From positions 20,584,001 through 20,648,000 of the forward strand of contig CM119379.1 in assembly GCA_051294905.1 (NCBI GenBank): a stretch of DNA of 64,000 nucleotides. The letters run 5' to 3'. Every line of letters begins with the position of its first letter. Position 1 is the first letter of the stretch. The position numbers and the translations under genes are program-made. Below are positions 1-52,037 of this stretch, in pieces. Below the pieces are notes generated by a model. That model worked only from the letters and a program-made list of their open reading frames with translations, was not told the DNA's origin and made no database searches. The stretch comes from Botryllus schlosseri (lineage: Eukaryota).

Positions 1-31
1 TTTCGATGACGTTTGTTCCGATATTTTTCAG

Positions 32-26000: not shown

Positions 26001-29000
26001 TATAATTTCCTTAGGCAAACAATGCTGGATATTTTCTATGTACTCTCTGAGCGTCGTGTGGGAATATCTTTTCAATTTTACTTACAGGAGATTGGGTTGT
26101 GGTAGACGTTCCCACTTTAGAGATCGATACGTTCCTTGTTTACGGCGTGGCGGAATTCGAAAACACCGTACAAGACACTGAAATACCAAATAATTTCACT
26201 GTGAAGGCCAGGGTTATTTTCATTCGGGTTCGTATTTGAATTTTGCCGATTTACAAGTGCTGATTTGTATATCAAACAGTTTTGTAGTTGACGTATCAAA
26301 ATAATGGCCTACCACAAACTATTTCCCTATGCATCACACTATCTCCTGACTTGTGAGATGTAGCTTTGGATTTTGGAAAGCAGAATTTATCACTGTTGGG
26401 TGCCATTGCTGATTTAGAGATATGGAATTTGATTTCAAACGGCAATGAATCATGACTATTCCTGTTGCTGATTTAGAAATTTAGAATTTGATTTAAAACA
26501 GCAGTGAATCATCATTTTACCTTGAGCTACCTTTGATGAATATAGAAATTGAGAATTTGATTTAAAACAGCAGGAGATCATTCATTACTGTACCTTGAGC
26601 TAGCTTTGAGTACAATGCAGCATATCACGACAACTCATTTTCTTCGATACTTTCCAGGGTGGTAGACTCATCTTAGGCTGGGAGGACGATCTATTCCTTG
26701 GTCTCGCTGAAATCATACTCACTGGCGATATAAGCGACGATGAGTATGATCTGACGCAAGATGTGACTTTGGGTACGAAGGCTATAGGTAATTATAACTG
26801 CATGGGGTATATTAGTGTAAACAGTTCCAATACAAGATCATCTGTTTCAAATAGGTGCGTTCGGGGGATTAGATCTCCACGGAGCGGATGTAGCGACTGC
26901 CTGGACCCACCTACTCTACACAGCGATTCCTGGCGAGAGCACCATCATGCTGGCAGAACTAGTGGATTGGGTCGAAGGTGAGACAGTGATTTTATTTAAC
27001 CGTGTATTTATAAATTATTTTTCCGGTTCTTAGCCCACAGTGCCTGTTGAAGTCGTTTTTCTTTGATTTTCTTTACATTGAATGCTACCTTCCCAATAAG
27101 GGTACATTTGCTTTGAAGTGACACACGATTCTTTTCGTGCAGGGAACGAAATTATGATCACGCCGACTGCTTTTGATCCTTGGGAGGCGGAAATATTCAA
27201 GATTGAATCGGTGTTTGTAAATGCGGGAACCAACACTACCATGCTGCAACTGAACGTAACTCTTCAATATAAGCATTTGGGTAGGTTAATCGAATATAAT
27301 ACCACAGACAGTGTAAAAATGGTGTGAATATGGTTTTGTAGCGAGTGATTACACGTTCGGCAATGCCGACTACAGGATCGCCGCTGAAGTTGGGCTCTTG
27401 ACTCGAAATATCAAAATCCGATCAGATTGGAACGATGACTCCAGCGGGCAGTCTTTTGGCGGCCGTGTCGTCGTTGGAACGGTGAACTATCTGCTTTTAA
27501 TATAACTGCAAAATGAAAACATCCTTACTATTCGTTGAATATTTCGGTATGCCAAGTCCATTGGTAGCCAGTATGGTGTATTTCTACTAATTCAGAAGAC
27601 TCAAAGAAGGCATTGCTGGCTTGCGTCACTTACTTAAAATGGCTATTGATTTTATTGGTTTCGAGCTTTTAAGGTCAAACTAGGTCCTGCCCAACTGATT
27701 TTTTTACCTTCTTGGAAATCACTGCTACTACTATGGTAGAAACTTACAATCTTACTTCTACTTGTTGATGATAACTGATTAGACCACCTCTGTTCAATTC
27801 CTGGAAAGTATGTGGTTATCCGGAATACAGTAATAAATAATATTATTCCTATATGTAGCGATATATTAAATTCATTCGCCAAATATCTCATCTTCTTGTG
27901 TTTGAATTTAGATCAGTATTGGACGGCCTGGGTTGACATGTACATACTGATTTATAACGGTGTAATTCCTTGCATTTTTATCAGTGTCAGTAGCCTTACA
28001 CTCTCCGTTGTCAGCCTCGTGTGATATAGCAATAATTCTATATATTGAGTGCATGATTGGACAGGGGACACTGTCTTATCACCTGATTTTGAGCGGCAAT
28101 TTATCTGTTGTTGTAGATTCTACTGCAAAACACACAGTTTATCGGTTACGCCCGCGTTCAAAACGTTGAATTTATCGGGATGGGGCAAGAGGGATACTCC
28201 GATCGCAGGGACCCGAGATATGCATTTGTGTATTCCGAAACAGGTTTCTCCATCGTGTGATACATTTCTTGAATTGGGACTAGCCGATTGATTTGCGGCA
28301 GGCACACAGAACGGGATACGTCCGTCGTATTTGAAGAAATGCTCCTTCGCCCACAATTACAACACTGCGGTCGGGGCGTTCGGAGCTAACTCGATTACGA
28401 TGAGCGACAATGTTATCTACCACACTGTCGGTCCTAGCATACGGGTCCAAGGCGAAGATAACAGGTACAATTACCCTCAGATTTCGGGTTTCGTAAATTT
28501 TATCCCACTTGTAGCTTGAGTCGTCATTTCAAATGTTCAGGAATGCTATGGCAGAGTCGTATAAATACTAGGACTGGGCAATATCCAGTATTTGAGTGAT
28601 TCAATTATTAAGTTTCGTGTGATGTCAAGGTCCCGAGAGCCACCTATCATGACAATATACGCAATAATAATGACTTTAAAACATCACACCTGTATCTCTT
28701 TCGTGGCCACCAGGAACTTGTGGCCATTTAGATGTCATCCAAAATCTCCTATATCTGGACCAACAGTATTTCCCAAAGCTTTGTGAATATAACGAGGCTT
28801 GATCATTACTTGACGGAAGTGTGATTTCATAATAATTTGTAGTCTATGGAACCTATTTTTTATTTCGAGACTCCAGAAGTGGAGAGGAAGTATTGCATCT
28901 ATATATTTGTTATTAAATTTTTACTCTTGGTGCGAATGCTAGTACTTCCGTTATGTGACAAAATTGGCTGTCACAACTCTGCTCGAGTCAACGCGATTGA

Positions 29001-32000
29001 TACCTCATCTCGGACTGGAGTACTGGAACTTCTTTGCTCAGCCCCAGTTAATACACAATTATGAAGAAGATATTTGATTTTAAACGCTTTCAATTCTTCT
29101 CTCGCTGTAGAGTTCTGGATAATCTGGTGTCGCTCATGATCAACCCAGGTACTTATAACGGTAAAACAAATTACATTTGGGACTGGTTTGGCGCTATCCA
29201 GGTGGGTTGTACGTATGCTTAGTTTTGACTTTTGCGACATCGTGTCTCTGCATATCCAAGGTGTTTGCCGCGTCATCAGTCACTCTTCAAGGCAACGTAG
29301 TGGCCGGGTCAGAGCGTTCTGCTTACTGGTTGGGCGGTGAACCGTGCGATGAGGAATGGTTTTCTGGTAACACGGCCAGATCAAGTGTGTACGGCGTATA
29401 TGTGAACAAGTTTGGTATGTAGTCCACTTCTTTTACAATTGTAAATTCATCCTGCTGTCATTTCTATCCTTTATGCTGCTTGTCATTCGGCAATATTGCT
29501 TCATTCACTGCAAATAGCTCGGTGTATAGTCTTTTGCATTGACTTGATTTTATCCATTTTACCACACCGAAAGCCATATGCAAGCAAGGCTGTAGATAGA
29601 CCTATGTCTGTCTCTGTAGTAATGTAGGTATCGACCTATTGAACTTGAAGTACTAGTTTCTTCCTCAGCCGAAGTTTTGCTGTAAATCAATGATGTTCAT
29701 GTCGGATATGTTTTCCGAATTGCCTTAATTATAAGCAAATATAGATTATATAGACCAGTGGTTCTCAACTGTAGGACCGTGGCAGGCTCTACCGGACTGC
29801 CAAATATATTAGACTTTTTATATCTCAGATCCAAAATGCATAAAGTTGGACGCCGGTCTAATAGGTAGAGAAATGAAACATCGAATTTTAAATTGATTTT
29901 TAAATTTCGATTGGGTGCTGTATGAAACTTTTTAAAAGTAACCTACACCTTGTTTACCAAAGTTTATATGTGAAACTATAAGGAGACCTGTAAACTAAAT
30001 TTTGACAATACAACTTTGCGACATTAAGCAGTAGAATAGAGGCTAGGAAACAGCAAATTCGCATTTATTTCAAGGAAACCGAACAATTCAAGTTAGTGGT
30101 TTTCAACACCACTTTTATTTGAAGAAACTTCAATAAAACCACATATAACACGACTAACATCAAAAGCAGCATTAAATGTAGTTTGCAATTATTGAGGTTT
30201 GCCGGTCCGCAAAGTAAAAAGACTGAAGATCGCTTCAATACAATATAATGATACGTATCAAAATTCTGATATTAGTCTGGTTTTGGTTGTAGATAATAAT
30301 TTCAAAAGTATAGATGTGGCTGAGACTGGTAGATTTCGAACCTGAGTGTCTCCAACTCGTAACTTGCGCTTGGAGCTTACCATACACACATCATCATTTG
30401 CAAATTATGAATGTGTCAATTTTTGTTCTCTATTTTATGTGTTCCCGTGTTTAATTTCAGGCCAAGGCTTGTGCTCGGCGATTCGCGATTTCAACATCCA
30501 CTACTCTTATTATTTCGGTATTTACTTCCAAGACAGTAGCAATATCGAAATATCCGACTGCCTCATTACCGACTCTGGAGTCGGTATCTTGACACTGTTC
30601 AACGGGTGAGTCTTTTAATATGTTGATGAAATTTCTACATTTTTGTCATAGCCCTAAGAATCATCGCGCAACTCTCGAATTTTTTCTCAATGACCGAATC
30701 AAACCTGGTACCGACATTCATACGGCCACCCAATCCGAGTTTTGTTGTCACAATGGCGCTTATGCCACTGTTTTCTTATACAAGCAGATAGCAATTTAGT
30801 GAATTTATGAACAGATTTCGATTGAATTTTCCATTACATGCAGACATTCAATTATCCATATTGCTGCAATAGTGTTATTTGCAACACCTCGAATTGCTTA
30901 CATGAATCTTGTGTGAAATGACCATGATTGATTAACTATCGGCGGATATTGAGAATAGCTTATAGTCCTTCATGAAATTAGCCTGTGTTGTTGATGAAAT
31001 TTATTAGCTTGTGGTACAATAGACATTCGTAATTCTAAGTACCATAATATGATTTTAATAATTATAATATCTCAAATCCAAAGAATAATCAATCTGCCAC
31101 CACACTTCCTAGGACATTTTAAGAATGTCTACTTGAATATTTTCTCTCCTTTTCACAGACCATCATCCACGACTCATCTCTACCAAGAGAAATACGGCTC
31201 GATTACCAACGTCCAAATTGTCGCCGTCACTGAGCCAGGTATATATTTTCACTTTCAAACCCCGAGACTTCGTCACCACCTTTTTCGTGTTATCAGGAGT
31301 TTGCCCGCAGCTGGATACTTCCGCCGGATACATATTGGCAAGCTCAAACGCTCAGACCCCTAATGACGTTCGCAGTAGCACAGTGGGAATCATGGCACCG
31401 TCGTTCATGTCTGCTCATAATGCCGCTCCGAAAAAGCCCTTCCCGGGCTTGATGCAATACCCTGCTCTGGGCGGTAAACTCACAATCCAAGGTACGAATT
31501 TTTGTTTATTCTGATCCGGCAGCATTCAATATCTCTGCAGTCAACACTCCGAAGAACGCTCCATACCATAATCGATATTATTCAACGGTTCAACAATATT
31601 CAACCGATTATTCAATCATTTGTTTTCAAATGTCTTTGTACTTTTCCAATTTTGAGCATGAATACAGGTGAGGGATTTTATTCCTACCATGACAAGTCCA
31701 AAAATGCAAATCCTAAAATATTTCAATCAATCCACTAAAAGTCCTGGATCTGCTATTCGTCCAACTGTTAATGAAGGCGCAAATATTAAAAGGTTGGCAC
31801 CAGCTCAATGCCAAAAACGAGTCCTTGCTATTGTTTATTAAATTATAGACGCCAACTTTAATTTTAATCTAGGCGATACTACTCCATGTGTATCGATTCG
31901 CAGGCGCGTCTTTTGTGAATTTTGGTGACGCAACGTGTTCTGGTGTGGATCACACCGCCATCACTATGAACTCGAAGAACGAAGACTATCACCATCCCGT

Positions 32001-35000
32001 ATTCGTTAGTCAGTCGACATTTGTCAATTCCCCAACGGGAACGCGCGTTTACTACAGCAGGCCCAGTCTAGGGTGAGTTGAAATTGGGACAATTATGTTC
32101 GTATGCAGATCGAATTTTCTGCGGGAAGAATTGTAGGCAGAGAATGCAAAGAAAATTATTTGGATTTGGTTATTTTTATTGGATCTTGATCTGAGGAATA
32201 TGAGTGTATGCCTTGGCATATGTATATCTTGTGTTTATATTGGATCGACAAGCTACAAAAGATCCAAAACATCGCTGCTCGTTTGGTAACTAGGTCAAGG
32301 AAGCGTGATCACGTAACACCGATTCTTAGATCCCTTCATTGGTTACCCGTGAAATTTAGGTCTGAATACAAGCTTCTTCTGTACGTCTTCAAATGCATGG
32401 AGGGAAGTGCACCAGCGTATCTTCGTGAGCTAGTGACAATGTAAAATCCCGGTAGAGCGCTACGTTCTCAGTCGCAAAAGCTCTTGTCCGTTCCAAGAGT
32501 CAGAACATCGACCTACGGCGAGAGAACCTTTTCTTCCTCGGCCGCCATTCTGTGGAACAATCTTCCAATTTCTATCAGACTATGTGACTCGCTATATGTT
32601 TTCAAACGCAAAATCAAGACCGTTTTATTCGCACGAGCGTTCGAACTAGAGTAGTGTTCATTCCGCCCTACAACTATGCACTTCGTCTTTTATACATATC
32701 CTTTGCTTTTATATTTTATTGCCTTTTATGTACAGCGCCCTAGTGTTGTAATGATATATTGTTATATTCGGCGCTCTATAAATTATATTATTATTATATT
32801 CTTTATTCACAGTAAAACTGGTACATACACACATAATCCGGGGAGCAACCTGCCCCCAAAGGAAAATGGCGAGATTGGAGTAAATTTTTTAAAATTTCAG
32901 TTATACATTCAAATTGTTATTCCTATGCAATACACGGAGAAGTCAGATTACAGAATTGCAGCAGATGAAGAATTGGCAAGGGTTACAGAGCAGAGGTAGA
33001 GATGATTGAAGATGAACAATCGAAATTACAGAAATTATGCTGTGATTCACAAGTGTAATTTTAGTCCAGTGGAGCATTCAAGGCCTTCCGAAGAATGTGC
33101 ACAGTCCCCAATAATGTGATCTTTTGGATCATGTCGAATCGAACGTTACCCGGAATTTGTTGGATATGTCTCATGAGTTTTTTGCTCACGACCCCTGTAG
33201 CGCCAATGACTGTCGGTACAATGTTTATTTTGCATCGCCACATTTTCTCACATTCCATTTTGAGGTCTGCGTATTTGGAGTGTTTTTCTGATTCTTTTTG
33301 CTGTAGGTTGTGATCAGCTGGGACAGCCAGTTCAATGAATAAGCATTCTCTTTTTCTTTTTAGTTTGACGATTATATCCGGGCGGTTGCTTCTGATTTCG
33401 CGGTCAGTTATAACTGGTACATCCCACAGAATTTTTACTTGTTCGTTTTCTGTCACTGGTGCTGGGCTGTAATCGTACCAATTTTTTGTCTAAGTGGTGA
33501 TGTCAAAATGTTTGCATAATTCAAGATGAATGTAGTGACCAATCCTATTGTGTCTCCATGTGTATTCGGTAGCTGCAAGTGCACCACAGCCGGACATGAG
33601 ATGTGCTACAGTTTCATTTTGGTTGTGGCACATTCTGCATTTGCCGTCCGTGTTTTGCTTCAGAATATTATTCAGAAATATTATTATTATTATTATTATT
33701 ATATATTTAGTGTGCCCCAATTTGTTTGGCTTGATTGCCTCGCCATTACAATGATTTTGTGTTGTCTTTCGAGTGATCAAAATCTAGAATCTTTTCGAGA
33801 AACTTGAAACCCCCTAATATCTTCGCCCAATCTCATTCCTTTTCAGTAAGTGTAGAGCTCAACTTTGGGTTTTCAGGCTAAGAGCCTGAACCATCCCCCT
33901 TCTGCAGTGAATAGTATACTCTGTCAAGTCGATGTCTTTACTTCAGTAAGATCAACCCATCCGACTGCGTTGATATGGAATGCGACGGCCACAAGAATTT
34001 CATAATCACCGATCTTGACGGAACGTTCCTGGGCACTCCGGGAGACATTATACCTGAGGTATCCTATGATCTTTCTCCTTTTGTAAATCTGAGGATTCCA
34101 AACTTTGCATCGCTCATATACCGTGTACTAAGTCATTCCAAATTGATGACAGTTTTCATGTCAGGTAATGAGGTCAAGTTTCTATTTAAGATGTTCAAGT
34201 ACAAAGCATGCCCTTTGTTTGTGTGTGTGAAATTACCATGATTAATGCAGTTATTTTCGATTTTTTCAAATTTACAAGCTCCATAAAACACAATGCTTTC
34301 ACGCAATTTCTCATGTTCCGCTGCTAGTACTGCATCGATCACCCATCATTTGATGCTTAATTTTGCGACAGGCCGAATTTGAATGGGACGGTGACAAGGC
34401 TAGGGGTCTGGGAGACTACAACATTCCCGAAACTCTTCTGACTTATCCAAACGGAACTAGAATACCAATCGACAAAATCGCGCCCAACAAAGGAATTATG
34501 CGGTAATATCTCAACGTTATGAGTGTAATGTAGAACCGAGTCGCCTTGACACCGTGTTTCTCCGGCCTAGGGCTGATGACGCCACCAGGAATTGTGTGTA
34601 TCAATCGGCCTGGCAAGCGTACGAATGTCATGGGTATGATCATCAATTGTTTTTGTTGGAGAGTTTGGATATCGACAGCGAGACAAGGAGGATTGCGCCT
34701 GTGGCGCTTCTCACCGACGGATACGTTGATCTCGAAAATGGTATGTCTGCGACATTTTGGCTGAGACGATCCGGTACATGACACTTTTAAAAATTGAAGC
34801 AGTCAACTCAAATTTCAAATTGGAAACCCCCATGCTATAGCAAAATAGTGTATTCGCTTGCTTTTACCACGACTAAGTGACATCAATGACTACAATCGGC
34901 TGTATCTAATAGCGATATGCTGTTGACATTATTACCGACTATAAAAAATGACTTTGCGGCGATTATTGGTAACACGTCTATCATTCTCCCTGCAACTTAT

Positions 35001-38000
35001 CAGTTTGATCCATTTTGATTTCAACAGGACCCCAAGACCATGGATGGTGTGCGGGTTACACCTGTCAATTGAGACTATCGACTTTCTTTACCACTACCGC
35101 TATCGGCTCTGTTTACGAGATACACTTCTCTGGTGGGTAGCTGTTTTGGATAAGGATTTTTTCATCGTTTGATTCCAATTAATATTGACTAAATGCACAG
35201 ACTGTGTATCCTACCGACCAAGTAGAGTGAGATTAAATGCTATTATTTTACTCAGCTGCGTGCAATCCGATGTTTATAGCCGATTCAATGCTCACATTTG
35301 CAATATTCTGTCTCTAATATTGAACAAGACAAGTCGTAATTCTTTGCGCAATTAGGCATCACTGGTCTTGTAGTCTGCGAATGTTGATTGCCCGTGTTCT
35401 GCGATTGATCGAGCTCACCGTCATTGCTTTAACTTCAGTTGGCTTATTTGGGCTATTAAGTATATGTCCGTTCGTTAATTTGTATTACTTTGTATAGGTT
35501 TGTTTCTTTTAACCGCAAGTGACCGCAAACCTAGTTTCATGAACAACGTTGTCTTGTGATATACATTATATCCTTTCTGTTACGCCATTTATTTGAATAT
35601 ACCACCCTTTATCAATGGAGCTCCATTTTCTCAAGCTCAGTTGCTGAATTCGAGTTTTATTTAGAAAGTAGCAATCACAGCTATCCTAAGAATCAACAAC
35701 ACTGGCCTTGCTAACTATTGAGCATGATAAGCTATTTGTGATATTATACCTTCCAAGGTCTTTGTTTGACTGAACTGAATTAGGCCTTCGTGCGTGGGCT
35801 TCCGTGTACTAAATAGACGGTCACTGCTTTTGAGTTTTGCGCATATACGGAAGACAACGTTCGTGCGTTATGGTACTTTTCATTGCGCCGCAGGCACCAA
35901 CCCAACTCAGTTGCGTCTCAGACTACCTCACGCATCTGCGAACGACGCTATTGTGGCTTGCATTTTCTATTCTACATCCAATCGTCTGGATGTTTACTAC
36001 GATGATGCGTACGTCATGCCAACAAACGGTTATGAGCAAAATGGTAAGAAAAACTAGGTGTTGTCTGTTAATTCCATTTTAATAGACAGACAGACAGATT
36101 CTGTATTCGTACGATGAGAGTTCACACAAATATGTAAAAAAGACAAACACAGCGATGCGACCACAACAAGATGTGTAGTCTTCAAGTCAGCTGTAGTCAA
36201 AGTACATTTATATCATGCAACTGTCGGTCAGTAACACTTCAACAAAAGATTAAACAACAAAACGCAAACGCAAAACAGTGGTAGTAGAAAAAAAAAAACT
36301 GTAACACTAGTTCAAAATAAATACCGGATCATACTCTTACATCTCAATATGTATAAATGAGTGTAGACTTAAAATTCCGACAGAATGATGCAAATGACAA
36401 ACCTCTGTGCTCTATTGATAAGGAGTTCCAAATCCTTGGACCAACAGAAGTTAAGGATCTCTGGCACACACTAGCGGCTAAATTCTGTATAATTTTTAAT
36501 AGCAATTAGTACGGTAGCCACACCATGGTAAGTCTGCTATTTTCTTATAACATTCGTAGCTCATGTTCACATCAAAAACCAGTAATATTGTGGCCAATGA
36601 TAACATAAGGTGAAATACTGTATTTGATCATTATGCAGTCAACAAACCGCCGTTGAAATCGATATTTGTTGGCAAAATTGTGAGAATATTGTTCTTGACG
36701 TGATAGCAACATCTTGATTACGATATGAGCTAACTGTAATCATTTTTTCGCAAGATTAACGTCCGGAAATGGTACTATAAAGTCTTTATCTAATCTTGAA
36801 TCCGAACATTATGTTCTAACAGAAAATTTCAATCGAATTTCGAATCCACTGCACCGCTTTTAATAAAGCCTAATCCAAAAATTATATTAGCGTTGACCTT
36901 ATATAGTGATTGTGAAAGTGAAAAATTCATATCAAATTTCAGTTCTAGTGCACCGTACAATCTTTATCTGGATCTATTACCCGCCACTTTCGTCACATAT
37001 GCGGCATTAATTGTACAGGTCAAGTGCTGACAGACGCTCCGCCCGAAGACCAGCCTATGTTGTACATGCCAAATGTCACGAGTCCGGCTGCCTCCAATTT
37101 CTACAGCAGATACACCAAAACTATTTGCGTCACTGTGAGAGGCCCGCTACCGATGGACGTAGTGGTAAATGCGCACCCAATTTCTGTGTTTACTGTACAA
37201 ATGTAGCGTAATGCTTCCTGTCTTTGCATGTTAGTCTTAATCCGTGTCATCAGCAGAGGTGATCAAAATACCCATCGTTGTACAATGATTTTTAAGTAAT
37301 TAAAAAGCACATATACTAAGCCTAGTTTTTATTGAAAAAAAGCGAAAAATGTTTAGTATACGTGAAAGTACTATAAAACCATAACCAGTTGACGAAGTGC
37401 AAGTAGAAAAAATGTACTTGAGCAGGGTCGGATTCTCCTGGCCTGGGTGGCTAGGCTTTGATGACACTGTTATATTGAGCCTCCTGTCTATCCAGTGCTT
37501 ATAAGATAGCGATTTCTATACCTTCCGTGTCCAGCGGCATCTGTACATTATGGATCATGGTATGTATATGCACAGATCATGTTTATGTATGTCATTAGTC
37601 GGTGTGTATGTCGCAAAAATGTATAATGTGCTATTCCGATATGTATATTGCGATTCGCCGAATTCCGTTTTGCTATACATTTTGTTGATTTGCGCGGTTG
37701 GCAATAAAGATTCTCTCTCTCCATAACCTGCCATGCCAATGAACCAGTTTAGTATCGTAATGAATTTGAATATATGTTTCGAGAAATGATTGTTTCTTGT
37801 CGGCTATTCATTTCCTGCGTTTGCCTGCATCTTTTCTCTACGTTACCAGGTCTCGGCAGCCATCTTTTTGTCCTTCAACGTACCCTCAGTCACGGTGGAC
37901 GAGTTTTTCGACAAAGCACGGAAAAATCTGGCTGCTCTGCTTGGCGTAAGAACGTTTTTGTGGAGTCGTTGAGTGCAAATTTACCGATATCAGATCCTGT

Positions 38001-41000
38001 TCTTTGTCAATTGGTTTCTACTTATTGCGTGTTGGCAGTCCGTTCCACGCTCCGTCCGACTCACTTGTTTATCTCTGGCATGCGTTTCCAGGTCACTGAA
38101 GATCGTATATGGATTGCAAATGCTGTAAGCGAGTTATCGGGCCGGAGGCGAAAGCGGGAAGGCGAATTAACTGTTACGTTTGGGATCGGTTCGCAGCCAG
38201 CGACAGCGTCGCCAGTCGTCGAGAGGACCATTCCTAGAGCGGTACATTGCAAATTATGTCATGGTTTGCTGATGAAGTAGGCCTGTACGGAGAGTTGGTC
38301 AAAGTAGTTAGTGTTGCTACTGGAGTTGAGCTGTAAATGATTCTCCAATGCATGTAGAAGTATCGATTAAGTAACATTAGTGCAAAAAGTAATACGTCCT
38401 GCCTAAAATGATGTGAGTAACAGAAGGGGAAATGGTATAAAAACATGACCGCCGGAATAGTTTGTAAAAGTAGGCAAATATATTTTGAGTACCCTGAAAA
38501 ACCGGCCGCATCCGCAGACGATGAGGAACATTCTCTCACGTGGATGCTTAAATGTATTCTGCTACGCTGTGCGGTTATTCGGTTATTAGTAGGGCAAGTT
38601 TTTGCGACTTTTTTTTACAACTTCCAGCGGCTTCCTAAGTACTCAGAAGTTTTGTAGTATGGTGTTTTAGGCTGTTTGGAGGAATTTTTCGTGCTACAGT
38701 GCCTTGGATACGGAACGACTCGAGTATCTCATACCCTAATAATTTCAAGGAACTTTTCCATAAATGCAACTTTTTAGTGCAACTTGTGTGAAAAATAAGT
38801 GCAACTTTCCGTCGATTTTACTGCAACAAAAACTTTCCCTAGTTATTAGCAATCCTTACTGTACATACGTAGGTTGTAGAGGAGTCGGACAATGGGACCG
38901 TGACCATCATAAGTCCTGGTGAGCCCGATGAAGCCACCGAACTTGCGACCGCGGCGGATGAAGCCGAAAGGGCTGCACTGTTGGCGGTGAGAATTGTCTT
39001 TATCTGTAACGATTTGTAGATTGGTATTGATGTTTTGTTATCGACGGTGCTATGTGCAGTGTGGGGTGTCAAATTTAATAATGCCCCTGTTCGAATTTTT
39101 GGCAATGACCGACATAGTTGGCGCTTAAAATTGGCTGGCTGTGTCGGTCAGACTTGCTGAAGTATATTCCGTATATTCATAATGAAGGATAGTGGATCAC
39201 TGCAATGTATTACGATTGTAGTAATACGGTCAGTTGCGACAATATGCACATGCGTACAATCGTATAATGGATCGTACTAGAACAGTGGTTCTTAATCTGA
39301 GTCAAGACCAAGAACCCGAGACACACGCCCAACACATGAGATTCGTGAATACATGCCCATCTGAGACATCAATGGCTAAAGGGTATAAGGTGCGAGCAGT
39401 ATATTCGAATTGTGTTTCTATAGATTAATAATACAGGGCACACAAATAACATCCAGTCGTGATAAACTCTCAGCAATGTGTCGCGCTGACAATATATCAA
39501 TTCGAAACTGAAATCGCAAGAAATAGTAGCAGTCTTGAAAACTGATAGAGTTTACTTCTCGCGCAGAACATGGAAACGATAGCCGCCGTGGTGGAATCGG
39601 GACAGGCGACTGAGTTAATCACAGATGGGGTACCAATATCAGGAATAGCACTCACACCACCACCGCCGACGCCTACCACTGACACTGAGGTAAGTTGTGT
39701 CACCGAGCCATCATTTAAAACATGATATCATTTGGCATCAGCCATGGGTATTTGAAATTGCTCAATTGGTAAAAAAGAAAACACTTTACTTTTCAGAACG
39801 GAACAGACTCAGTTGAGCCGATTGTGCTGGTTGAAGTGGCCAGTTTAGCTACGGTCGCTTCACCTGATCCTATGGGAGGTCGGGCTGGAGTAGCGTTTCA
39901 AGGAGCGGCAGTGGTGAGTGGCTGTGGAGTGGAGGGGGGAAATAATTTGGAATCTGACCGTGGCGTTGCTATCTTTTCTAGTATCAACTTCTCGATGTAA
40001 ACGGGGATGTTGCTTCTCCGCTGGCACATTGGGTGGTGAAAGCCTCTATTTTCGAAGGGGATGACGAGACCGCCAGCATCGTAAGCGGATCCGAGGAACC
40101 AATGGTCGATGGTATTGCACGGTTTGAGGGTACGTTTATTTACTGGTCAAACCTATGAATTGGCCATATTTTTATTCAAATACTCGGGACAGACTTAGAC
40201 AACTAGATAATCCTAAGTATATTAATTAGAGCAAAATGCCATTAATCTAATTGTAATCTAATTTGTTAAATGATTCATAGCTATAATTCCAATCGAATTT
40301 CCGTTTCTCTCGAAAATGCCACAGGAGAGCTGTACATAGCGAAACGAGTCAAGCTTGTTGTACAGATGTTTGTCATCCGCGTGCTTATGGGAAGGAACTC
40401 TCATTTCATATGAAGTGAACCAGATTCAATTTCCAAATCTTCGTTAATTCAGTAATTCGAACTCCAATCTAATTTGAGAAAAACTGTAGCTCTAATTCTA
40501 ATTGTAATCTAATTTGGCCACATTGATCCGTTTGTTTATTTCAAGATTTTCATCAAGATAGAAATAGAGAGAAATAGCATAACATAACATTGCTTTCTTT
40601 CGTCTGGTCTTTTACTGGGCTTTTTTGTCGCCGTAAGAACGGCAACGGCGGGGGAAGAGGAGCCCCGATAAACCTCCGACGGGAATCGAACCCGGTTCGT
40701 CAGATTGGTGGGTGCTTATCGTAACCACTACACTATCTCCCCCAGCATACATGCAATTGAAATGTGATTTATAGATAAGCAAGGTATAGACTGGCGGCTC
40801 GATATAGCAGTGGAAGGGTTGTAAGCAAGTCACAAGGTTCCGAGTCACAGGTCGATTTTGCTTTTATAGTTTTGACTCGAGTCAATGAATAAACTAAGGT
40901 CATTGCAAATACAATTTAGCAGTCGCTTGAAAGCAGAGATTCAAAATGTTGTTTTCTTGTGCTCACAAGAAAGTAAATTAGTGCTTTCAGGTGGTAAGTG

Positions 41001-44000
41001 ATTCCACATACAACCACCAACACAGGTTTGCGATAAAATGAAAAGATAGGGCGAATGTCGATTTGGTGAAAGTCCGACCGCTTTGGTAAGCGGATTCTGT
41101 TTTATTTACAGAGTTTTTAAAAGGTTTCGATTTCTACGAGATTTCAATACGTAATTTGTCATTTCGAAAACCTGTGCCGCCTGGCTGCTGGCGCGGACAC
41201 TTGTCTTATGTTTGGCTGTTTCAATTTACGGCAGATTTGACAATTGACAAAGGCGGGAGATACGTTCTGCAATTCGTAGCCGAGTCTGGAAACATCAGCA
41301 GCGGTAACACCAATTTCATAGTAACGGCGCCTGCCATCAATGTAAGATGATTTTGCTTGTTTTTATCATAGGCGCACTTAACAATCCCATTTCTTTCGTT
41401 TATTTTCGAATTTTTAACTATTCAAAACAGCACAAATTTCGTTTTGATGAAAAAATGGGAGTGTGCCGAAACGACTTGGAGTAGTCTTGTATTTAGACGC
41501 CCAGCTTGAACCCAGAATAAATAAGTGCAATGTGTCAGTTGGCGGTGTCGATATGTCCGGTTGTGGTCCAGTAATTGCGATTATGTGGTCTTGGACAATC
41601 TGCATTGACCTCTACAATCACTCGATCTGATAAAGGAGTTCAATAGCGATCTTAGCTTTATCGCATATTATCGTTTAAACGGCTCTTGTTATGATTTATA
41701 ACAACCTATGCCCGTATTACGCTTCAGCTGAGACCACCGCGAGTGCCTACCGAATGTACGGACGAAGAAGGGGACGATTTCTTCGACAAGGAATATATCT
41801 GGGAACAAGACAATTGTACTCATCTATGCACCTATAATTGTGACGGTATGCATTTTTCCCTTGACGTGATGATTGTCCGTATTCGAGCTGTCGTCTTAAC
41901 AGTGTGACAGATTTGAAAAGTCTAAATATGCACCGGTTCTGCATCACATTCTAATTTGTTATTTTTTCGACCATGCCTATTTCATTCACGGTTTTTGGTT
42001 GAACACGACTTCGCGGATACGTCATTCAAACTAACTAGCATTAGGATGGAGTAAAAATGACTTTTTTTTCTCGAATCAAAAAAAGCAGGTTCGTAAATCC
42101 CGACAAATGACCTAAACTTCAATAAAAATTGACTTTAGGGGACTGCCCCCATTTTCAAGCCGGCAACCCCCCAATTTCTGCGCGCGAGTGGGCAAAATCG
42201 CCCATCTCGGCAACCGCAGGTCGTAGAGTCATGAAATATAGCTCAAAAGCTGCTAAAAGGTCGTGTTTCTATCCGTCCTTTGAAGAAAGTTCGATCTGTT
42301 GTGCACACAAAGCGAGTTATAGCCAAAAATGCAGTATAATTCGATGCGGGTAAACTGCGGGAGTAACAACATCGCGCGTAGCTTTGGGCTACATGTTTCA
42401 TGGGCCTATGATACGATGCGACCAATGGAGGTTTCAAGGCTTGCACAATTGAAAAATCCTATCAGCACTTTAATTTCCGTGAATAAATTACCCTTCAGTA
42501 CTCGAAAAGATCATCTGTCACTACTTGGTTCGAATTATTAGTATTAATCCTCGATTCAGATTTGAGTACTCGAACCATTGTGCCCAACCCCATTTATAAG
42601 CCTACAATGTACTTAAGCTCCAATTCTATTCTCACACTCCATGTAGGTTCCGGTGAGCGCTGCAGAGATATGACGTCGTGCGGCCCACACGCAGAGTGCC
42701 TGGACCACGAGTGCGTGTGCGGCATTACTACGTTCGATCCGAATCTTCCTGAGAATCTCGAGGCTACTTTGTCTCCCGAGATAGAATGCGCTTCCAGCTA
42801 CATTGAGTTGACGTGAGACGCTTGGCTATTTTTGACGCGCTGGGCGAATGTTGAGAGCAATCATGTACATTAGAGAAGAATTATCCAACTTGTAAATGTT
42901 TCGATGTGCATGTGCAACGCTTTACTCGTTACACCGAGTCCTTCATACACGCCATCCCTGGTTTTGCATTGTGTCTTGTGTGTATCGCATTGTGATCCTA
43001 CATGGTTGATTACTATGTGAAATAAGTTGCAAAAGCTACCAAGTTCTTACTTTTATTGTACATTGTGTGCTTTGAGCGGATGGCTATTCATGAATCGATG
43101 CAAAATGTAACTACAGGCATGAATAATCGAAACTATTGATATTTTCAAGTTTCATGGTGATATATCATTGGTGTTATGCCTGTTTTTTTGCCATAGTCTG
43201 CTAAGGAATTAACGGGTATTCACTGAGAAATTGATGTCTTGTTAAACAAAGTGCTATCAGTCAACTTCTATGGGACTTATGCCAATAATTGTCGGAACTG
43301 TTCATTCTTTTTCATTTTTGCCGTATAAGCTATCTGTCAAAATATATCTTAAGTTTCTGACTGATATGTCGGGGGTGTCCTGGTTATTTTTGCCGTACTC
43401 TGCTGAAGAATTGGTGGGTATTCGATCATAAATTAATGTCTCGATGAAGTATATAGTCCACCAGTATACAGCCATAACATAGTGATGATTCCATGACAAA
43501 GCACTAGAATATGGTTTTTCGGTGTAATGTTGATCATAAACTTGACCCCAATGCTGCAATTTCTCAACCATAGAATCTTGTTCATGGCAGGATCGATAAG
43601 TGTGGCGCGAACGCCATCGGTTTTAATTTGGCCAAACTTTTCCTGCGGGGTGAAGGACTGAGGCTGCGGCGCGCCGCTGTGGAAACCGTGTTTCCAGCGG
43701 ACAGGTCGTGTTCGGGGAGAGTGATAAATACCTTTGACGGAATCAGGTACAGCTTTAAACTGGAAGGAAACCTGAACGAATGCGATCCGGAAGTAATTGT
43801 GAGTAGTGTTCCGAGGGTTCTGGACTTTGGTGGCGTGTATGTGTATGAATTGTTGTAGCAAAGTTTGGCTAGGCCTGTGTTCTCTACGATAACAAAATAT
43901 GTCATACAAAATACAAATACAAATACAAAATAGTTATAATCTTCGAAAATATACTCAGCAGCTTCTGTGGTTATTAGATGCGGTTCTTACGTCGATGTCA

Positions 44001-47000
44001 CGCCTAAAACTGATGTAAATTTACCTATACTACTTTTCACAATACAAGGTATAGCCCAAAAAGCGAGTGGGTATGCCTAGGAAACTGTTCAAGCAGAATT
44101 GGAAATAGTATGAAAACACAACCACTAGAGTAAGTAATGTACGTACGCAACACCTAAAGTACTCTAAAAAGGGAGTACTTCATTACTGACCATGTCTGTA
44201 CATAATCTCTAAATACAACTTCTAAATTCGTGCTGCGAGCATGGTTTCGAGTCGATAATATGAAGCATATTCATTTGAAATTCGGACGTTAATGTGAGAT
44301 GCCACTAATTTCAAATATATTCGCAGGATAACGGAACTCACATTCAGTATTACCATATCATGCACGGCTACAAACCTGTGCGACACGGTAACATCATCCG
44401 CGATCGCCCGATTGAAGTTGAATTCATGTGTGCTTACCCGAGTATGTCCAAGGAGACGTTGGACACGCCAATCCTGCCCTACATAAGGTAACGATTTTGT
44501 AATTTCGGAGACTTGGTGGTTGTTGGTAAGGTCTGATCGATATTTTGGCCGATATCTGTCACTGTAGGACTATAGGAGAATAAGAAAAATTGCTATGTCG
44601 TTCCCCTACTAGAATGACACGGGATGATTTCCCCATGGCAGTACATAGAATATCTACTGATGGCACGATAATTTGATATGGCGCAGTCGATGAACATTGC
44701 TAGTACTAGTGATTTAATGATGACTCTCACAAGTCTGACGTGTATGCTGTTAATAACTACATATATTGCTCTATTCTTTGTTTCGTTTATGATATGGCCC
44801 TTATGATTGTAATCGTTCTTTCATAAGGCAATCGGTTATGTATGCAAAATCAGTATGATTACTTGACTATGTAGTATTTGTCATAATTGATTACAATTAT
44901 ATATTGCTATGTATGATTATGAAATGATTATCTTTGTGATATTTTGCTCACGCTTTGATTTTGAGCAGGGCTCTGGAGTAGGTATAAATGTTAAATTGCT
45001 CCAACTCCAGCTCTGCAGCTCTTTTTATAAACTAACTCCAGCTCCGGAGCACCTTTTCCATTTGAATACCTCAGTAAAAATTATCAACTGGGTCAGTCAG
45101 TAGTCGTAAGCTAATGAATGGTAGAGCAGTAAAGATATTTGCCGCTCGACACTTTTGCCAGTCTACACTCCAAGTCTGCAGTTTTGTGCTCTGCAATCTT
45201 TTGAATGATTGCCATGCACATTGTATCGCTTGGTCTCTAATCTTTTTCCTCATTTCAGTGTGATTACGATTGGCGTCGAATCGCAAGGCTCTTACAATGT
45301 GACGATGAGTTTGTGGACAGACAGCGATTACACCGTTCCGTTGCAGTCGCCGGCGTCAATTCTGGTTTGTAAAATGCTTGCGATTTTTTGCACTTTAGCG
45401 TAACTATAGTGATCGACGCTCAAGAAAGTTCATACTCAAGTAGAAATAGAGGTCCCACCGTACATTTTTATACAAATAAAAATAGCAATTTCCAAGTAAC
45501 TAAAAAAGTAAGTACACTAGGCTATTTTTCCTAAATATTGAAAACTGCTTGAGTGAGTGCGAATCTTAATTTGTCAACCGTATAAATCAATATGATATAT
45601 AACGAAAATGCAGTTGGGTTAAATGAGATATGCATACCGGTATCAAAGGCATAGATGGCAGGCTTCATATAACGGAGTCATCAAAGCCAAGCCATCCAAG
45701 AACAAATAGAGCAAGTGGGAAAAGCGTACTTGAGTACTTTGAAAACGTGATGGCATCCAGGGCTGTCCATTTAGAAAATTTGCTGGACGCAAAAGTGATT
45801 TAGTATCATCGTGGAACATGCAAGCTGTCAGTGTGAAACGAGGTTTTCTACAATGTAAATCGGACTTTGGCAGGACTGTTTGATTTTTATTGTCTTGTCG
45901 CTGATAAGCAAGCTCAGTGTTCTTATTCATTTCGCGGTTAATTGAAAAACGCTGCTATATTATTTTATTTGTTGTGTCACAATAATGACAATATGCCTGT
46001 GCGGCCATATCATCACTGAAATTAATTCGTTCTGCCAGACTCGCGTTTTGCACTGCAGTGATACTGAGCTGGAGTTACGGTATAAAATTATCGGAATCCA
46101 TACTTCACCCTGTTTTAAGTGCTGAGATTATGGTCACGTTTGTCATATACTCTTCATTCTTTTCAATGCCAGGTTCCTGATCCGCTGCATGTGTCTGTGA
46201 AAGCCGTCGGAGCTGACAGCGTCGTGGTCTCCCTTGACAAATGCTCGGCTTATTCGTCGCAGGACACGGACAGTGCGCTCTCCGTAGATTTGATCACAGA
46301 CGGGTAGGCTGTTATTCTCATACTTTCCTTCATGTATATTTTCATACCTTCAAAACACCTAAAGACTGACATAAAATGAAAGGATAGGAAGGAATCGTAA
46401 CGACTTGGGAGACATACACACAGCACACATAATGAAAAGTGTGCCAATCATGATTATTTCACATTGAATCCATTTCCATTGCAGCTGCCCGAACACTCTT
46501 ATCGATGTCGAAGTCACGCAGATTGGTACATCCAACGAGGCGAGGTTCAGGTTCCCATCGTTCGTTCTTTCCACCGAATCGACCGAAGGCGGTTTAGACG
46601 GAGAACTGTACTTGGAGTGTTTCGTTGTGATGTGCACGGAGAACTTGGAACCTTGCACACCGGTAAAGGAATTAATATGCCAACTGTTACTGCCTTTGAT
46701 ATTTGTCGTTTTTGTATTGCTGCTGCTATTTGTATATCAGACGGTGTTAGACTTCTAATGTTTCAGACTACTAAGTAGGTTTCACCTACGTACAAGTAGA
46801 TATAGTATAGTAGTTATACTTTCGGCTAATTTGCTGTATACTTGGCACTTTGTTCAGCAAAATTACTTACTTTTTGCTCTTTGTGTATTGTAAAGCGAGT
46901 AGTTAAAGTTTTGAGATGTTTTCATCAATTTTACGAGTGAGATTATCATGCCGAGAGGGCGAAATAGCCTCCGTATCACGATATCTGGTCATTGTCATAA

Positions 47001-47105
47001 TTGTATCTTTCAGGATTGCGGTGGACTAAGGAAAAGGAGAGGTTTGCCCGGTAATACAATAACCCTAGGACCAATACCGGTTGGAGCAGTAGACCAATCT
47101 CAAGG
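32..47105 (+). CDS. PKHD1L1-like: Giant multi-exon chimeric gene: CAP - linker - 7xIPT/TIG - G8 - beta-helix - G8 - beta-helix - C-terminal region - Cys-rich/EGF - ZP (fibrocystin-L-like); 5' end outside the window, terminal exon unresolved
   Basis: 68 GT-AG exons with matching phases and no stop: 32-167, 1764-1948, 2000-2232, 2952-3038, 3670-3812, 3916-4060, 4292-4418, 4791-4957, 5046-5187, 7032-7188, 8114-8252, 9147-9392, 9843-9977, 11359-11492, 11560-11686, 11795-11992, 12613-12830, 13579-13744, 14514-14725, 15781-16033, 18044-18169, 18236-18387, 18538-18764, 18974-19203, 20630-20781, 21161-21316, 22064-22160, 22358-22562, 23518-23657, 23760-23880, 24361-24490, 25075-25240, 25314-25420, 25754-25892, 26088-26227, 26658-26787, 26855-26977, 27143-27280, 27342-27481, 28117-28243, 28302-28464, 29111-29201, 29261-29414, 30461-30605, 31159-31238, 31297-31491, 31904-32072, 33947-34058, 34372-34502, 34571-34740, 35028-35132, 35894-36043, 37019-37164, 37850-37945, 38092-38241, 38873-38986, 39567-39689, 39797-39913, 39982-40129, 41235-41341, 41728-41845, 42647-42812, 43591-43798, 44327-44487, 45259-45364, 46173-46303, 46485-46662, 47014-47105. 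Fibrocystin-L hallmark motifs include GQAFRLGRYPIHFH, FIEDGIETGN, TPAAFWVTNPDN, KINPSDCVDMECDG and GPQDHGWCAGYTCQ. Confidence 0.9.
2079..2232 (+). CDS. Thr/Ser/Pro/Glu-rich mucin-like linker
   Basis: AEAGGVTSPSTPEPYVTTDAVDAYETTSPSETTATPESTTPPETTPSGETT, ending at a phase-1 donor (g|gtagt). Confidence 0.85.
2952..13744 (+). CDS. PKHD1L1-like: Seven IPT/TIG domains, equivalent to fibrocystin-L TIG8-TIG14
   Basis: Repeated P.I.SISP..G...GG..ITI.G.GF....V.VG...C.V......I.C pattern, e.g. TPIVTSISPQFGTVNDTIQIEGTGFG, PSWDSILPSSGSIEGGNTVSINGTGF and TPVVSSVSPARGGTGGGTLVTIGGSDFS. Confidence 0.92.
5405..5929. repeat. Foldback: ~240-bp inverted arms with ~38-bp spacer
   Basis: 5405-5648 is the near-perfect reverse complement of 5687-5929 (caccaaatttggttcaattcc family). 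The same family occurs at about 1050-1500 and 4560-4740. Confidence 0.9.
6611..6862. mobile_element. hAT-like MITE (TIR tagggcaag); second copy at 38590-38841 in the opposite orientation
   Basis: TSD gtcacgtc / gtcatgtc here and perfect gttattag at the second copy; shared aagttgca subrepeats. Confidence 0.85.
11359..11992 (+). CDS. ~153-aa three-exon insert inside the sixth IPT domain
   Basis: Exons 11359-11492, 11560-11686 and 11795-11992 bridge phase 1 to phase 1 between the two halves of IPT6 (..CEIEQ / DLSQPIADISVPVKVK..). All are open with canonical splice sites. Confidence 0.75.
14514..16033 (+). CDS. PKHD1L1-like: G8 domain 1
   Basis: DVWSSPYTWGGLGVPGEGAFVVIPVGQDIMIDQD...GGRLEVGTEDEPFQHKAIITLHG...GTLDLHG. 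Confidence 0.95.
15236..15279 (-). ncRNA. Second, inverted minimal hammerhead ribozyme
   Basis: Reverse complement reads acgattaccc-CTGATGA-G-tttcagc-C-GAAA-ATAT-TT-gggttca. It is part of the inverted repeat 15212-15398. Confidence 0.65.
15328..15375 (+). ncRNA. Minimal type I hammerhead ribozyme (Penelope-like-element type)
   Basis: tgacgattgccc-CTGACGA-G-tgtcagc-C-GAAA-ATAT-TC-gggttca. Full core, 1-bp stem II, palindromic ATAT in stem III, UC cleavage site and a bulged stem I. Confidence 0.75.
16231..17108. mobile_element. Non-autonomous hAT (Buster/Charlie-type) element
   Basis: TIRs cagggacgggcaac / gttgcccgcccctg; perfect 8-bp TSD gtctaaaa. Confidence 0.9.
17538..17614. mobile_element. 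77-bp hAT mini-MITE inserted in a LINE 3' UTR
   Basis: TIRs cagtggttctcaaact / agtttgagaaccactg; TSD gcctaggc / gcctagac. Confidence 0.85.
18044..25420 (+). CDS. PKHD1L1-like: First parallel beta-helix (PbH1/CEMIP-like) region and inter-G8 linker with RKKR site
   Basis: AEVGLLTRNVVVRG, DQFGAQIMFH, GTHFGYWYRM, RWEHENFIEDVDGSLTG; SRKKRA in exon 25314-25420. Confidence 0.95.
19345..20100 (+). mobile_element. CR1/L2-clade LINE 3' fragment; clearest copy of the most abundant repeat in the window
   Basis: YNIICWRAASKAALKPLQKLQ...LEIAKFMYQFH, then 3' UTR cctaggcca.g.tgg.tgtc.gat.tcaaagactact. Other 3' UTR copies lie at about 1562-1700(-), 5930-6060(-), 8290-8740(-), 14030-14200(+), 15625-15765(-), 17500-17750(+), 46330-46430(-), 51450-51905(-) and 51940-52037(-). 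Confidence 0.88.
23925..24160. repeat. Degenerate minisatellite with cagtagtggt core
   Basis: About five units beginning acagtagtggt or gcagtagtggt, at 40-60 bp spacing. Confidence 0.5.
25754..26977 (+). CDS. PKHD1L1-like: G8 domain 2
   Basis: RWSDAAYWPTGTVPAAGEDVTIPSGDWVVVDV...GGRLILGWEDDLFLG...GAFGGLDLHG. Confidence 0.93.
26400..26615. repeat. Degenerate ~65-bp minisatellite (about 3 units)
   Basis: Recurrent gatttagaaat.tagaatttgatttaaaacagcagtgaatcat..taccttgagcta. Confidence 0.6.
27143..38241 (+). CDS. PKHD1L1-like: Second beta-helix region and conserved fibrocystin C-terminal region, with GRRRKR site
   Basis: AAEVGLLTRNIKI, GQEGYSDRRDPRYA, FMSAHNAAPKKP, EFEWDGDKARGLGDYNIP, ESLDIDSETRRIAPVAL, LSGRRRKRE. 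Confidence 0.95.
32241..32800 (+). mobile_element. L2-clade LINE 3' end (5'-truncated) with (ATT)n tail
   Basis: KLQKIQNIAARLVTRSRKRDHVTPILRSLHWLPVKFRSEYKLLLYVFK...LWNNLP..IR; 3' UTR ends ggcgctctataaattatattattattat. Confidence 0.92.
32801..33680 (-). mobile_element. R4/Dong-like non-LTR retrotransposon 3' fragment (CCHC knuckle plus restriction-like endonuclease)
   Basis: KCRMCHNQNETVAHLMSGC...YTWRHN; ILWDVPVITDREIRSNRPDIIV...IELAVPAD...KESEKHSKYADL...VIGATG. Flanked by (TAA)n on both sides. Confidence 0.88.
38873..41341 (+). CDS. PKHD1L1-like: Acidic/Pro-Thr spacer plus terminal Ig-like module of fibrocystin-L
   Basis: Exons 38873-38986, 39567-39689, 39797-39913, 39982-40129 and 41235-41341. 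The segment ..DGIARFEDLTIDKGGRYVLQFVA.. resembles the last fibrocystin-L module. Confidence 0.8.
40612..40742 (-). mobile_element. tRNA-derived SINE head; related copies at 48600-48840(-) and 57650-57930(+)
   Basis: ggagaTAGTGTAGTGGttacgataagc...ccgGGTTCGATTCCcgtcgg gives Pol III A and B boxes with no acceptor stem. Shared body gctcctcttc..cgc...gc.gttcttacgg. Confidence 0.8.
41728..42780 (+). CDS. TILa/VWC-like Cys-rich module followed by a uromodulin EGF-IV-like repeat
   Basis: ECTDEEGDDFFDKEYIWEQDNCTHLCTYNCD|GSGERCRDMTSCGPHAECLDHECVCGITTF. Confidence 0.75.
42781..47105 (+). CDS. ZP module (ZP-N + ZP-C), consensus furin site RKRR and external hydrophobic patch TITLGPI
   Basis: IECASSYIELTIDKC...RSCSG...NECD...DNGTHIQY...NIIRDRPIEVEFMCAYP...GSYNVTMSLW...LDKCSA...ITDGCPN...EARFRF...LYLECFVVMC...CTPDCGGLRKRRGLPGNTITLGPI. 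The ZP cysteine pattern is complete. Confidence 0.93.
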
Positions 47106-47684: not shown

Positions 47685-47751
47685 GCAACATGCAAGGAAA
47701 AGAGAAGTTGGTGAAGGAGTAGGTTATGTCGAGGCGAAGTGGGGGTTCTAG
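47685..47751 (+). CDS. Candidate terminal exon of the giant gene (no transmembrane helix)
   Basis: Strong acceptor ttttccag|g, phase-compatible with the 47105 donor, reads GQHARKREVGEGVGYVEAKWGF*, followed by AT-rich sequence. An alternative candidate is 47365-47464. Confidence 0.35.
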
Positions 47752-51190: not shown

Positions 51191-52037
51191 TAAAAAACGA
51201 CCTACCTAATTAACTCATGTCGCCATACTATCACGCCCAGACATTGATTCACTGATTTGGTACCATCTTTCGACTTTCTTTTTCATTTTCCTTTTTCAAC
51301 TAACATTTGTTACCGCCAGACTGTGTAGAGACAAGTGTACCTGCCTGATCGATTCGGGTGTGATCCAGTGTTGGGATCAAGCCACTACCTTTGAGTCATT
51401 GCACATTTTGACTCGAGTCAAGTCATAATTTTGAAGTATGAGTGATGATTCGAAGTCACTGCGATACAATGAAAAGATAGGAAGGTATCGAAACGACTTG
51501 AAGTAGTCTTTGAAATCAGACACCCACCTTGGCCTAGGCGATGTAGAGAAGAGGCAAGCACACTGACTGAAAAGTAAAGCAGAAAATATAAAAGGCAAGC
51601 GACAAAACGTGGTGGAATGTAGCGAAAGGCGAGATCGATACGTTAGGTCGTGGTCCGGTAATCTTGAAGGCTGACTAGCATTCATTTCAGAAGAAACTGC
51701 TTGTATTTCGACTTGAATGCGGACACGCTTGACGACGGCCAGTGAGATGCTGTTCCACAATTGGGTTCCAGCATACTTGATTGAGTATTCCGTCCTGACC
51801 ATATATGGTAGTTGTTCTTCGTTGACGCGCGTACGCCGCAGCTGTGCGCTTTTGACTCCGAGGTGAAGTAGTCGTTGAAATTTGCGGGATGATAATGACC
51901 GCAATGGTACTGATACGTAAACTTAGCAATTTCTAGCTATCAATTCAATTTATTGCTAATAATTTCAGCATTTCAATACACCACAAGACTGCGATACAAT
52001 AAAAGATAGGAAGGTTTCGAAAAGACTTGGTCTAGGC

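Follow-up and report, generated by a model that had tools for sequence, protein, structure and literature searches.

A fibrocystin-like gene of the tunicate Botryllus schlosseri ends in an anchorless ZP module resembling that of uromodulin

Across animals, the ZP module is the unit that generally forms filaments in extracellular coats, and fibrocystin-L is a giant surface protein, poorly understood and required for hearing. In alpha-tectorin, DMBT1, and Drosophila Dumpy, all of them membrane-tethered, a C-terminal ZP module is carried on a very large modular extracellular arm made of NIDO/VWD, SRCR/CUB, or EGF/DPY domains. None of these three proteins is known to contain G8 or beta-helix units. 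We analyzed 64,000 nucleotides of Botryllus schlosseri DNA (GenBank assembly GCA_051294905.1, contig CM119379.1, positions 20,584,001 to 20,648,000 of the forward strand; this whole stretch is the window referred to below). Here, a gene with a fibrocystin-like body continues in frame into an EGF-like and ZP module that resembles that of uromodulin and GP2. The architecture of this fusion is near certain. Our full-text literature searches retrieved no description of a protein that combines a ZP module with the ectodomain of a G8 protein or a fibrocystin.

In uromodulin (UMOD) and ZP3, the last strand of ZP-C is the external hydrophobic patch (EHP); protease cleavage at a consensus site frees the EHP and triggers head-to-tail polymerization, with the N-terminal regions protruding from the filament as arms (PMC7737619, PMC7486124). 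Residue R415 of ZP-N and the FXF motif of ZP-C are essential, the R415A mutation abolishing UMOD polymerization, and the N396 glycan is conserved (PMC7737619). The N-terminal regions of ZP proteins can far exceed the ZP module itself in size (PMC7737619). In vertebrate PKHD1L1, a cleavage site predicted close to the membrane end is conserved, and the ectodomain can be shed (PMC11527881). Among tunicates, Oikopleura dioica has the fibrocystin-like house protein oik14, with IPT, G8, and PbH1 domains and probably no transmembrane (TM) helix, while oik20 carries a ZP domain; both are produced by the giant Fol cells, which build the cellulose-based food-concentrating filter (PMC3390340). Eight fibrocystin homologues are known from O. 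dioica, four of which are expressed in the house epithelium (bioRxiv 10.64898/2026.03.31.715263).

The fibrocystin-like exons and the C-terminal graft form a single gene with one spliced mRNA. The RNA evidence comes from Logan RNA contigs of runs X1 and X3, plus run X5 from a second study. The exons at the 3' end of the gene are listed here, with RNA junctions written as the last base of one exon/the first base of the next.

41235..41341, + strand: last fibrocystin-like exon, sequence ...GGRYVLQFVAESGNISSGNTNFIVTAPAIN, ending in phase 0; RNA junctions 40129/41235 and 41341/41728
41728..41845, + strand: first graft exon, 39 aa, four cysteines (C-x19-C-x3-C-x3-C); RNA junctions
42647..42812, + strand: EGF-like stretch with five cysteines, then the start of ZP-N (IEC, C1); RNA junctions and translation
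43591..43798, + strand: middle of ZP-N, with the extra cysteine (IDKC), C2 (RSCSG), and C3 (NEC); RNA junctions
44327..44487, + strand: end of ZP-N (NGT sequon, fg-loop R-D, C4 in FMCAYP) and first half of the linker; Pfam and PDB matches
45259..45364, + strand: second half of the linker, with the internal hydrophobic stretch SVITIGV, and start of ZP-C; Pfam and RNA junctions
46173..46303, + strand: ZP-C exon with C5 (DKC); Pfam and RNA junctions
46485..46662, + strand: ZP-C exon with C6, C7, Ca, and Cb (DGC, LEC, VMC, EPC); Pfam and RNA junctions
47014..47105, + strand: final ZP-C cysteine (PDC), furin-type site RKRR, and EHP-like TITLGPIPV; junction 46662/47014, GT donor at the exon end
47685..47751, + strand: terminal coding exon, 21 hydrophilic residues, TAG at 47749-47751; ends of the X1 and X3 contigs

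Nine further exons thus follow the last fibrocystin-like exon in frame, encoding 444 aa, with GT..AG at every intron and the frame open throughout. The contigs from X1 (4,458 nt) and X3 (3,959 nt) each carry every junction listed for the graft, and separate X5 contigs carry 41341/41728 plus four later junctions. The joining of the two parts at 41341/41728 is therefore present in three runs from two studies. RNA contig depth is even, and the RNA contigs contain no competing loose ends at 41341 or 41728. On its 5' side, the X1 contig extends a further 2.85 kb, and the first 30 nt of this extension match exon 39982-40129 (the loose end corresponds to 40104-40128). Translation of the first graft exon reveals neither a Met nor a signal peptide. 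Because the junction is spliced in frame across studies, at even depth, into an exon with no start of its own, we conclude that this is one gene. The earlier note had predicted, from the sequence alone, that the graft continues the fibrocystin-like frame, and contigs of 4.0-4.5 kb bear this out. It had also named beforehand, as one outcome that would speak against it, expression of these exons as a separate gene; the RNA junctions instead join them to the fibrocystin-like exons.

The RNA contigs also redraw both ends of the region. The frame does not end at 47105, as had been supposed: this position is a strong donor (CAAGG/GTGAGA), the TGA at 47107 is intronic and spliced out, and the X1 and X3 contigs run past 47106 into a tenth exon at 47685, where the loose-end consensus matches 47694-47715. 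This terminal exon (47685-47751) contributes GQHARKREVGEGVGYVEAKWGF and then the TAG stop. Similarly, the preceding fibrocystin-like exon had been placed from about 41111, and RNA puts its start at 41235. The terminal exon also contains a second dibasic motif, ARKR, 17 residues past the EHP-like patch, and a polymorphism in QHA/TRKR, with T in the RNA contigs and A in the window. In the intron between the four-cysteine and EGF-like exons, short segments of ~35 nt (at 41952-41986 and 42494-42586) appear in RNA contigs and raw reads at high depth, up to about 120. On both sides these reads and contigs continue into unrelated sequence, so the segments probably belong to a short repeat with transcribed copies elsewhere and are not exons of this gene.

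The graft is constrained, functional coding sequence under purifying selection. Between the RNA contigs and the window, the module differs at 27 sites, 24 of which are synonymous third-position changes and three conservative replacements (D>E, I>V, R>K). This excess of synonymous variants is what identifies the module as functional. An exhaustive protein search with the 69-aa ZP-N exon as query recovered the orthologous exon of a relative, a 99-aa open reading frame (ORF) fragment on a 1.5-kb genomic contig that is 75% identical. The core, CSGRVINTFDGIRYSFKL, is invariant, and the loop is variable, with indels. The second match of this query, a coiled-coil protein, was spurious, and the same search returned no annotated full-length protein containing the exon. 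No orthologous locus was detected in a metagenome scan.

The module carries the sequence signatures of ZP-N and ZP-C in the correct order. Pfam scans were run exon by exon, and the whole-domain cut-off for ZP-C is 24.6 bits. For ZP-N (PF23344), only the last third was matched (positions 63-101 of 101; 13 bits, E 0.13; exon 44327-44487). The ZP-C model (PF00100) was matched at positions 2-25 of 133 by exon 45259-45364 (12.1 bits), at positions 32-75 by exon 46173-46303 (20.9 bits, E 4e-4), and at positions 86-132 by exon 46485-46662 (20.1 bits, E 7e-4). Four successive exons therefore match ZP-N and then ZP-C collinearly, with combined scores well over the 24.6-bit cut-off. Since consecutive exons match consecutive parts of the model, these signatures are more than chance.

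A phmmer search of the PDB with exon 44327-44487 points to the same family. All seven matches were to ZP proteins (five uromodulin chains, choriogenin H, and GP2), and the alignment to UMOD 412-442 was without gaps. Individually, these matches are weak (E 0.4-1.2), because the query is a single 53-aa exon and because sequence identity to uromodulin and GP2 is too low for a single exon to score better. Nonetheless, uromodulin, GP2, and choriogenin H are the only solved structures matched, which upholds the likeness to uromodulin that had been claimed. PDB sequence searches with exons 42647-42812, 43591-43798, 46173-46303, and 46485-46662 gave no matches. A two-sequence profile of ZP-N exon 43591-43798 gave only weak matches to FGFR Ig domains (E 0.017), which we read as generic Ig-like similarity. 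We also considered a VWD domain in this exon and rejected it: ESM Atlas VWD fragments scored 0.59, the Pfam E-value was 0.23, and we take the resemblance to be a chance TFDG..Y.F match.

All ten ZP cysteines are present across ZP-N and ZP-C. In ZP-N, C1 lies in IECASSYIELT, and the extra cysteine, in IDKC, follows 11 residues on, across the intron (43591). C2 to C4 come next, and the domain ends ...VEFMCAYP; cysteine count and spacing fit ZP-N. ZP-C has six cysteines, spaced C-x20-C-x43-C-x4-C-x6-C-x3-C. The cleavage region reads PDC-GGL-RKRR-GLPGN-TITLGPIPV, with RKRR four residues past the last cysteine. Thus the extra KC cysteine, ZP-C, RKRR, and TITLGPI are all in the sequence where the earlier note had placed them. 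The uromodulin counterparts it set beside them are LECGANDMKVSLGKC and VLNLGPI.

Features tied to polymerization in UMOD are also recognizable. An R-D pair in the fg loop aligns with UMOD R415-D416, and in the PDB alignment an N-G-T sequon of the module aligns with an N-S-S sequon of uromodulin; on the strength of this alignment, the position is taken to be that of the conserved glycan site N396. The linker is of UMOD-like length and its first half aligns gaplessly to UMOD; the second half presumably resembles that of UMOD as well. Candidates for the FXF motif of ZP-C are FRF and an aligned F-V-L, neither of them a secure assignment.

The two stretches before ZP-N are assigned by cysteine pattern. 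Exon 41728-41845 resembles TILa/VWC in its four cysteines alone; as 41728-41844 it matched neither PF12714 (TILa) nor PF00093 (VWC) in Pfam at E up to 10. The EGF-like exon 42647-42812 reads C-x5-C-x5-C-x4-C-x-C, five cysteines against the six of the EGF profile, and gave no Pfam match to that profile at E up to 10. For both exons, the cysteines described from the sequence are there, and the domain names lack a profile match. The sixth EGF cysteine may be the extra ZP-N cysteine, as in EGF IV of UMOD.

The encoded protein has no membrane anchor. The terminal exon adds only hydrophilic residues before the stop, and consequently the protein lacks a TM helix and a glycosylphosphatidylinositol (GPI)-type tail. 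Within the last 444 aa, no such segment was detected, the hydropathy maximum (19 residues) being 0.97. No TM-grade segment occurs in the whole model of ~3,313 aa either; its maximum of 1.68 falls inside a TIG domain. The earlier claim that all elements needed for polymerization are intact therefore fails in one respect, because the RNA-defined C-terminus is without the membrane anchor that UMOD and ZP2/ZP3 need. Anchorless ZP proteins of egg coats are known, however. The TM domain has been lost from stickleback ZP1 and ZP3, which are still egg-coat proteins (PMC8362008), and amphioxus BbZP2-5 are shown with no TM domain (PMC3543715).

Upstream of the graft, a chain of short exons on the + strand runs from about 1670 and continues through it to 47751. 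The exon-chain model has about 70 exons and encodes ~3,313 aa, and it recovers exactly seven of the ten RNA-confirmed exons. Pfam scans of the upstream region were made on stop-free exon stretches, and in the upstream body RNA verification covers the final exon only. Its features are as follows.

1671..40129, + strand: upstream gene body, with CAP, mucin-like linker, TIG/IPT repeats, and two G8 plus beta-helix units; Pfam, ~60 exons ab initio
1671-1949, + strand: CAP domain; Pfam E 2.5e-5
between 3916 and 13881, + strand: TIG/IPT domains (PF01833) in six exon stretches; Pfam
14396-14917 and 15781-16044, + strand: first G8, split; Pfam
18930-19415, + strand: first CEMIP-type beta-helix (CEMIP_beta-hel); Pfam E 4e-25
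26610-26978, + strand: second G8; Pfam
28292-28516, + strand: second beta-helix; Pfam

The CAP motifs GENL and W..E already occur at 3-173 (+), and a Thr/Ser/Pro-rich, mucin-like exon follows CAP within 1671-2243. The 5' end of the gene and its signal peptide are probably located where the window begins or ahead of it. By its predicted domains, the order is that of the fibrocystin/PKHD1L1 body plan. Of the features of a fibrocystin, the gene has the TIG/IPT arrays and two G8 domains, each with a parallel beta-helix; the C-terminal TM helix with a short tail is absent. The fibrocystin-like part showed no stop codon or TM segment of its own.

The window also contains features outside the exons of this gene. 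Its GC content is about 40%, and it is eukaryotic. Downstream of the gene, a 213-aa open frame on the minus strand (56082-56720) matches DDE_Tnp_4 (E 1.8e-8) and also Plant_tran; from these matches, it looks like a remnant of a PIF/Harbinger-type transposase. Broken open frames at 49700-50700 (minus strand) resemble, by eye, the reverse transcriptase of a non-LTR retrotransposon; two pieces that were scanned gave no Pfam match. An ORF-like motif (...HRLGQGGC.../...SPRPRWVSDF...) recurs on both strands, within many of the introns as well as beyond the 3' end of the gene, which points to a family of dispersed repeats, for example a SINE or a LINE tail. The 51380-51922 copy has no Pfam match.

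5128-5481, 8272-8634, 13890-14192, 17027-17317, 19845-20065, 49395-49601, and 51380-51922, both strands: copies of the recurring motif

The graft shares much with uromodulin and GP2. In each, an EGF domain or, in the tunicate protein, an EGF-like cysteine pattern directly precedes ZP-N, the extra cysteine lies 11 residues past C1, ZP-C has six cysteines, a basic cleavage site falls between the last cysteine and the EHP, and both the R415-D416 pair and the ZP-N sequon have counterparts. The layout of a filament core with N-terminal arms (PMC7486124, PMC7737619) would be alike in principle. Unlike them, the tunicate protein has no GPI anchor, it carries the furin-type RKRR where they have a site for hepsin, and in place of EGF I-III and D8C its arm comprises ~2,900 aa of CAP, TIG, G8, and beta-helix.

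The remainder of the protein resembles vertebrate PKHD1L1, with which it shares a giant ectodomain of TIG/IPT arrays and two G8 plus beta-helix (TMEM2/CEMIP-like) units. However, the C-terminus of PKHD1L1 consists of a MAD/SEA-like domain followed by a TM helix and a short tail, whereas the tunicate gene has the four-cysteine, EGF-like, and ZP exons instead. Compared by domain content, the N-terminus also appears to be replaced, by CAP and a mucin-like linker. The graft would thus exchange a PKHD1L1-type end for another protease-released terminus. Oikopleura oik14 and oik20 are tunicate proteins too, a likeness of domain type: the fibrocystin-like oik14 is secreted and used in a cellulose-associated extracellular matrix, and oik20 is a ZP protein; they are separate polypeptides, whereas the two parts are fused in Botryllus schlosseri. 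Teleost ZP1/ZP3 and amphioxus BbZP2-5 also lack a TM helix yet belong to egg coats, and several keep a furin-type site. In contrast to the tunicate protein, they are small, have short N-terminal parts, and are components of an egg envelope.

We propose that the gene encodes an anchorless matrix protein of ~3,300 aa that is secreted, cleaved by a convertase of the furin type, and assembled into ZP filaments, a reading to which we assign a probability of roughly 0.55. Secretion is in itself likely, the presumed signal peptide lying outside the verified part of the gene. Polymerization, whether alone or with partners, ranges from near even odds to fairly probable according to how strictly it is defined. 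The precursor would be soluble, with ZP-C blocked by the EHP strand, until a furin-type proprotein convertase cuts RKRR, either extracellularly or at a late stage of the secretory pathway. The site is furin-type and not that of a membrane serine protease, so a soluble cargo could plausibly be cleaved in the late secretory pathway. Once the EHP has departed, the ZP modules would link up head to tail, either among themselves or together with other EGF-ZP proteins of the same genome. Filaments formed in this way would bear beta-helix-rich arms of ~2,900 aa that presumably bind glycans, and would belong to an extracellular matrix, for example the tunic, a mucus filter, or the egg coat.

Several points weigh against this proposal. 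The assembly of UMOD and of mammalian ZP2/ZP3 requires membrane anchoring, and a soluble, anchorless UMOD ending after the EHP was neither cleaved nor polymerized (PMC7737619). RNA contigs drop rare isoforms, and a minor membrane-anchored isoform may exist. The first two thirds of ZP-N were matched by no profile or PDB search. Finally, over the upstream 40 kb the gene model is an approximate, ab initio one except for its Pfam matches.

The main rival is that the protein builds no filaments of its own. Other, membrane-anchored EGF-ZP proteins, for instance those of the vitelline coat, where such proteins are common in urochordates, would nucleate heteropolymers that take it up as a minor subunit, chain-end, or cross-linker. 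It has no anchor of its own, whereas UMOD needs one. Many ZP proteins of urochordates contain EGF domains, and the egg coat of Ciona has 11 ZP proteins (PMC3543715). Teleost ZP proteins without a TM helix are nevertheless egg-coat proteins, and we regard uptake into such heteropolymers as possible but unlikely. The missing anchor would equally suit a soluble secreted factor whose ZP module is a non-polymerizing dimerization or ligand-binding unit, as in endoglin and betaglycan. Yet the furin-type site is kept exactly between the last cysteine and the EHP-like strand, and the R415 equivalent and the gapless first half of the linker are features of polymerizing members, which makes a non-polymerizing module improbable.

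It could also be argued that the link between a fibrocystin-like gene and an adjacent ZP gene is nothing more than read-through or an artefact of assembly. A contig spanning two genes does not by itself prove a single transcript, and raw reads of run X18 gave almost no coverage. Against this stand the precise in-frame GT..AG junction, its recurrence between runs and studies at even depth and without loose ends, a graft that opens with no Met or signal peptide, and a fibrocystin-like part with no stop or TM of its own. We therefore consider two joined genes very improbable, and the secreted fusion protein built into ZP filaments remains our preferred reading.

A broader and more doubtful possibility is that in the extracellular matrices of tunicates ZP filaments and secreted, fibrocystin-like beta-helix arms function as a single machine, with anchor-free self-assembly and G8/beta-helix arms that bind or remodel polysaccharide. 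If so, the filaments might bind cellulose or sulfated glycans and organize the tunic, a feeding mucus net, or a sensory cupula. It would further be a hint that coats of the PKHD1L1 type and ZP matrices of the tectorin/uromodulin type share an ancestral link in function.

The fusion introduces no new principle, as ZP proteins with huge arms, anchorless ZP proteins, and secreted fibrocystin-like matrix proteins of tunicates are already known. Instead, it offers an example of an EGF-ZP cassette shuffled onto different arms in tunicates. As a natural anchorless fusion, it provides a test case for whether uromodulin-type ZP assembly can proceed without a membrane tether. The presence of fibrocystin-like and ZP components in one polypeptide hints at their joint action in the matrix. 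It also hints that fibrocystin-like ectodomains may have the role of a matrix component and not of a receptor, something that the Oikopleura house proteins already suggest.

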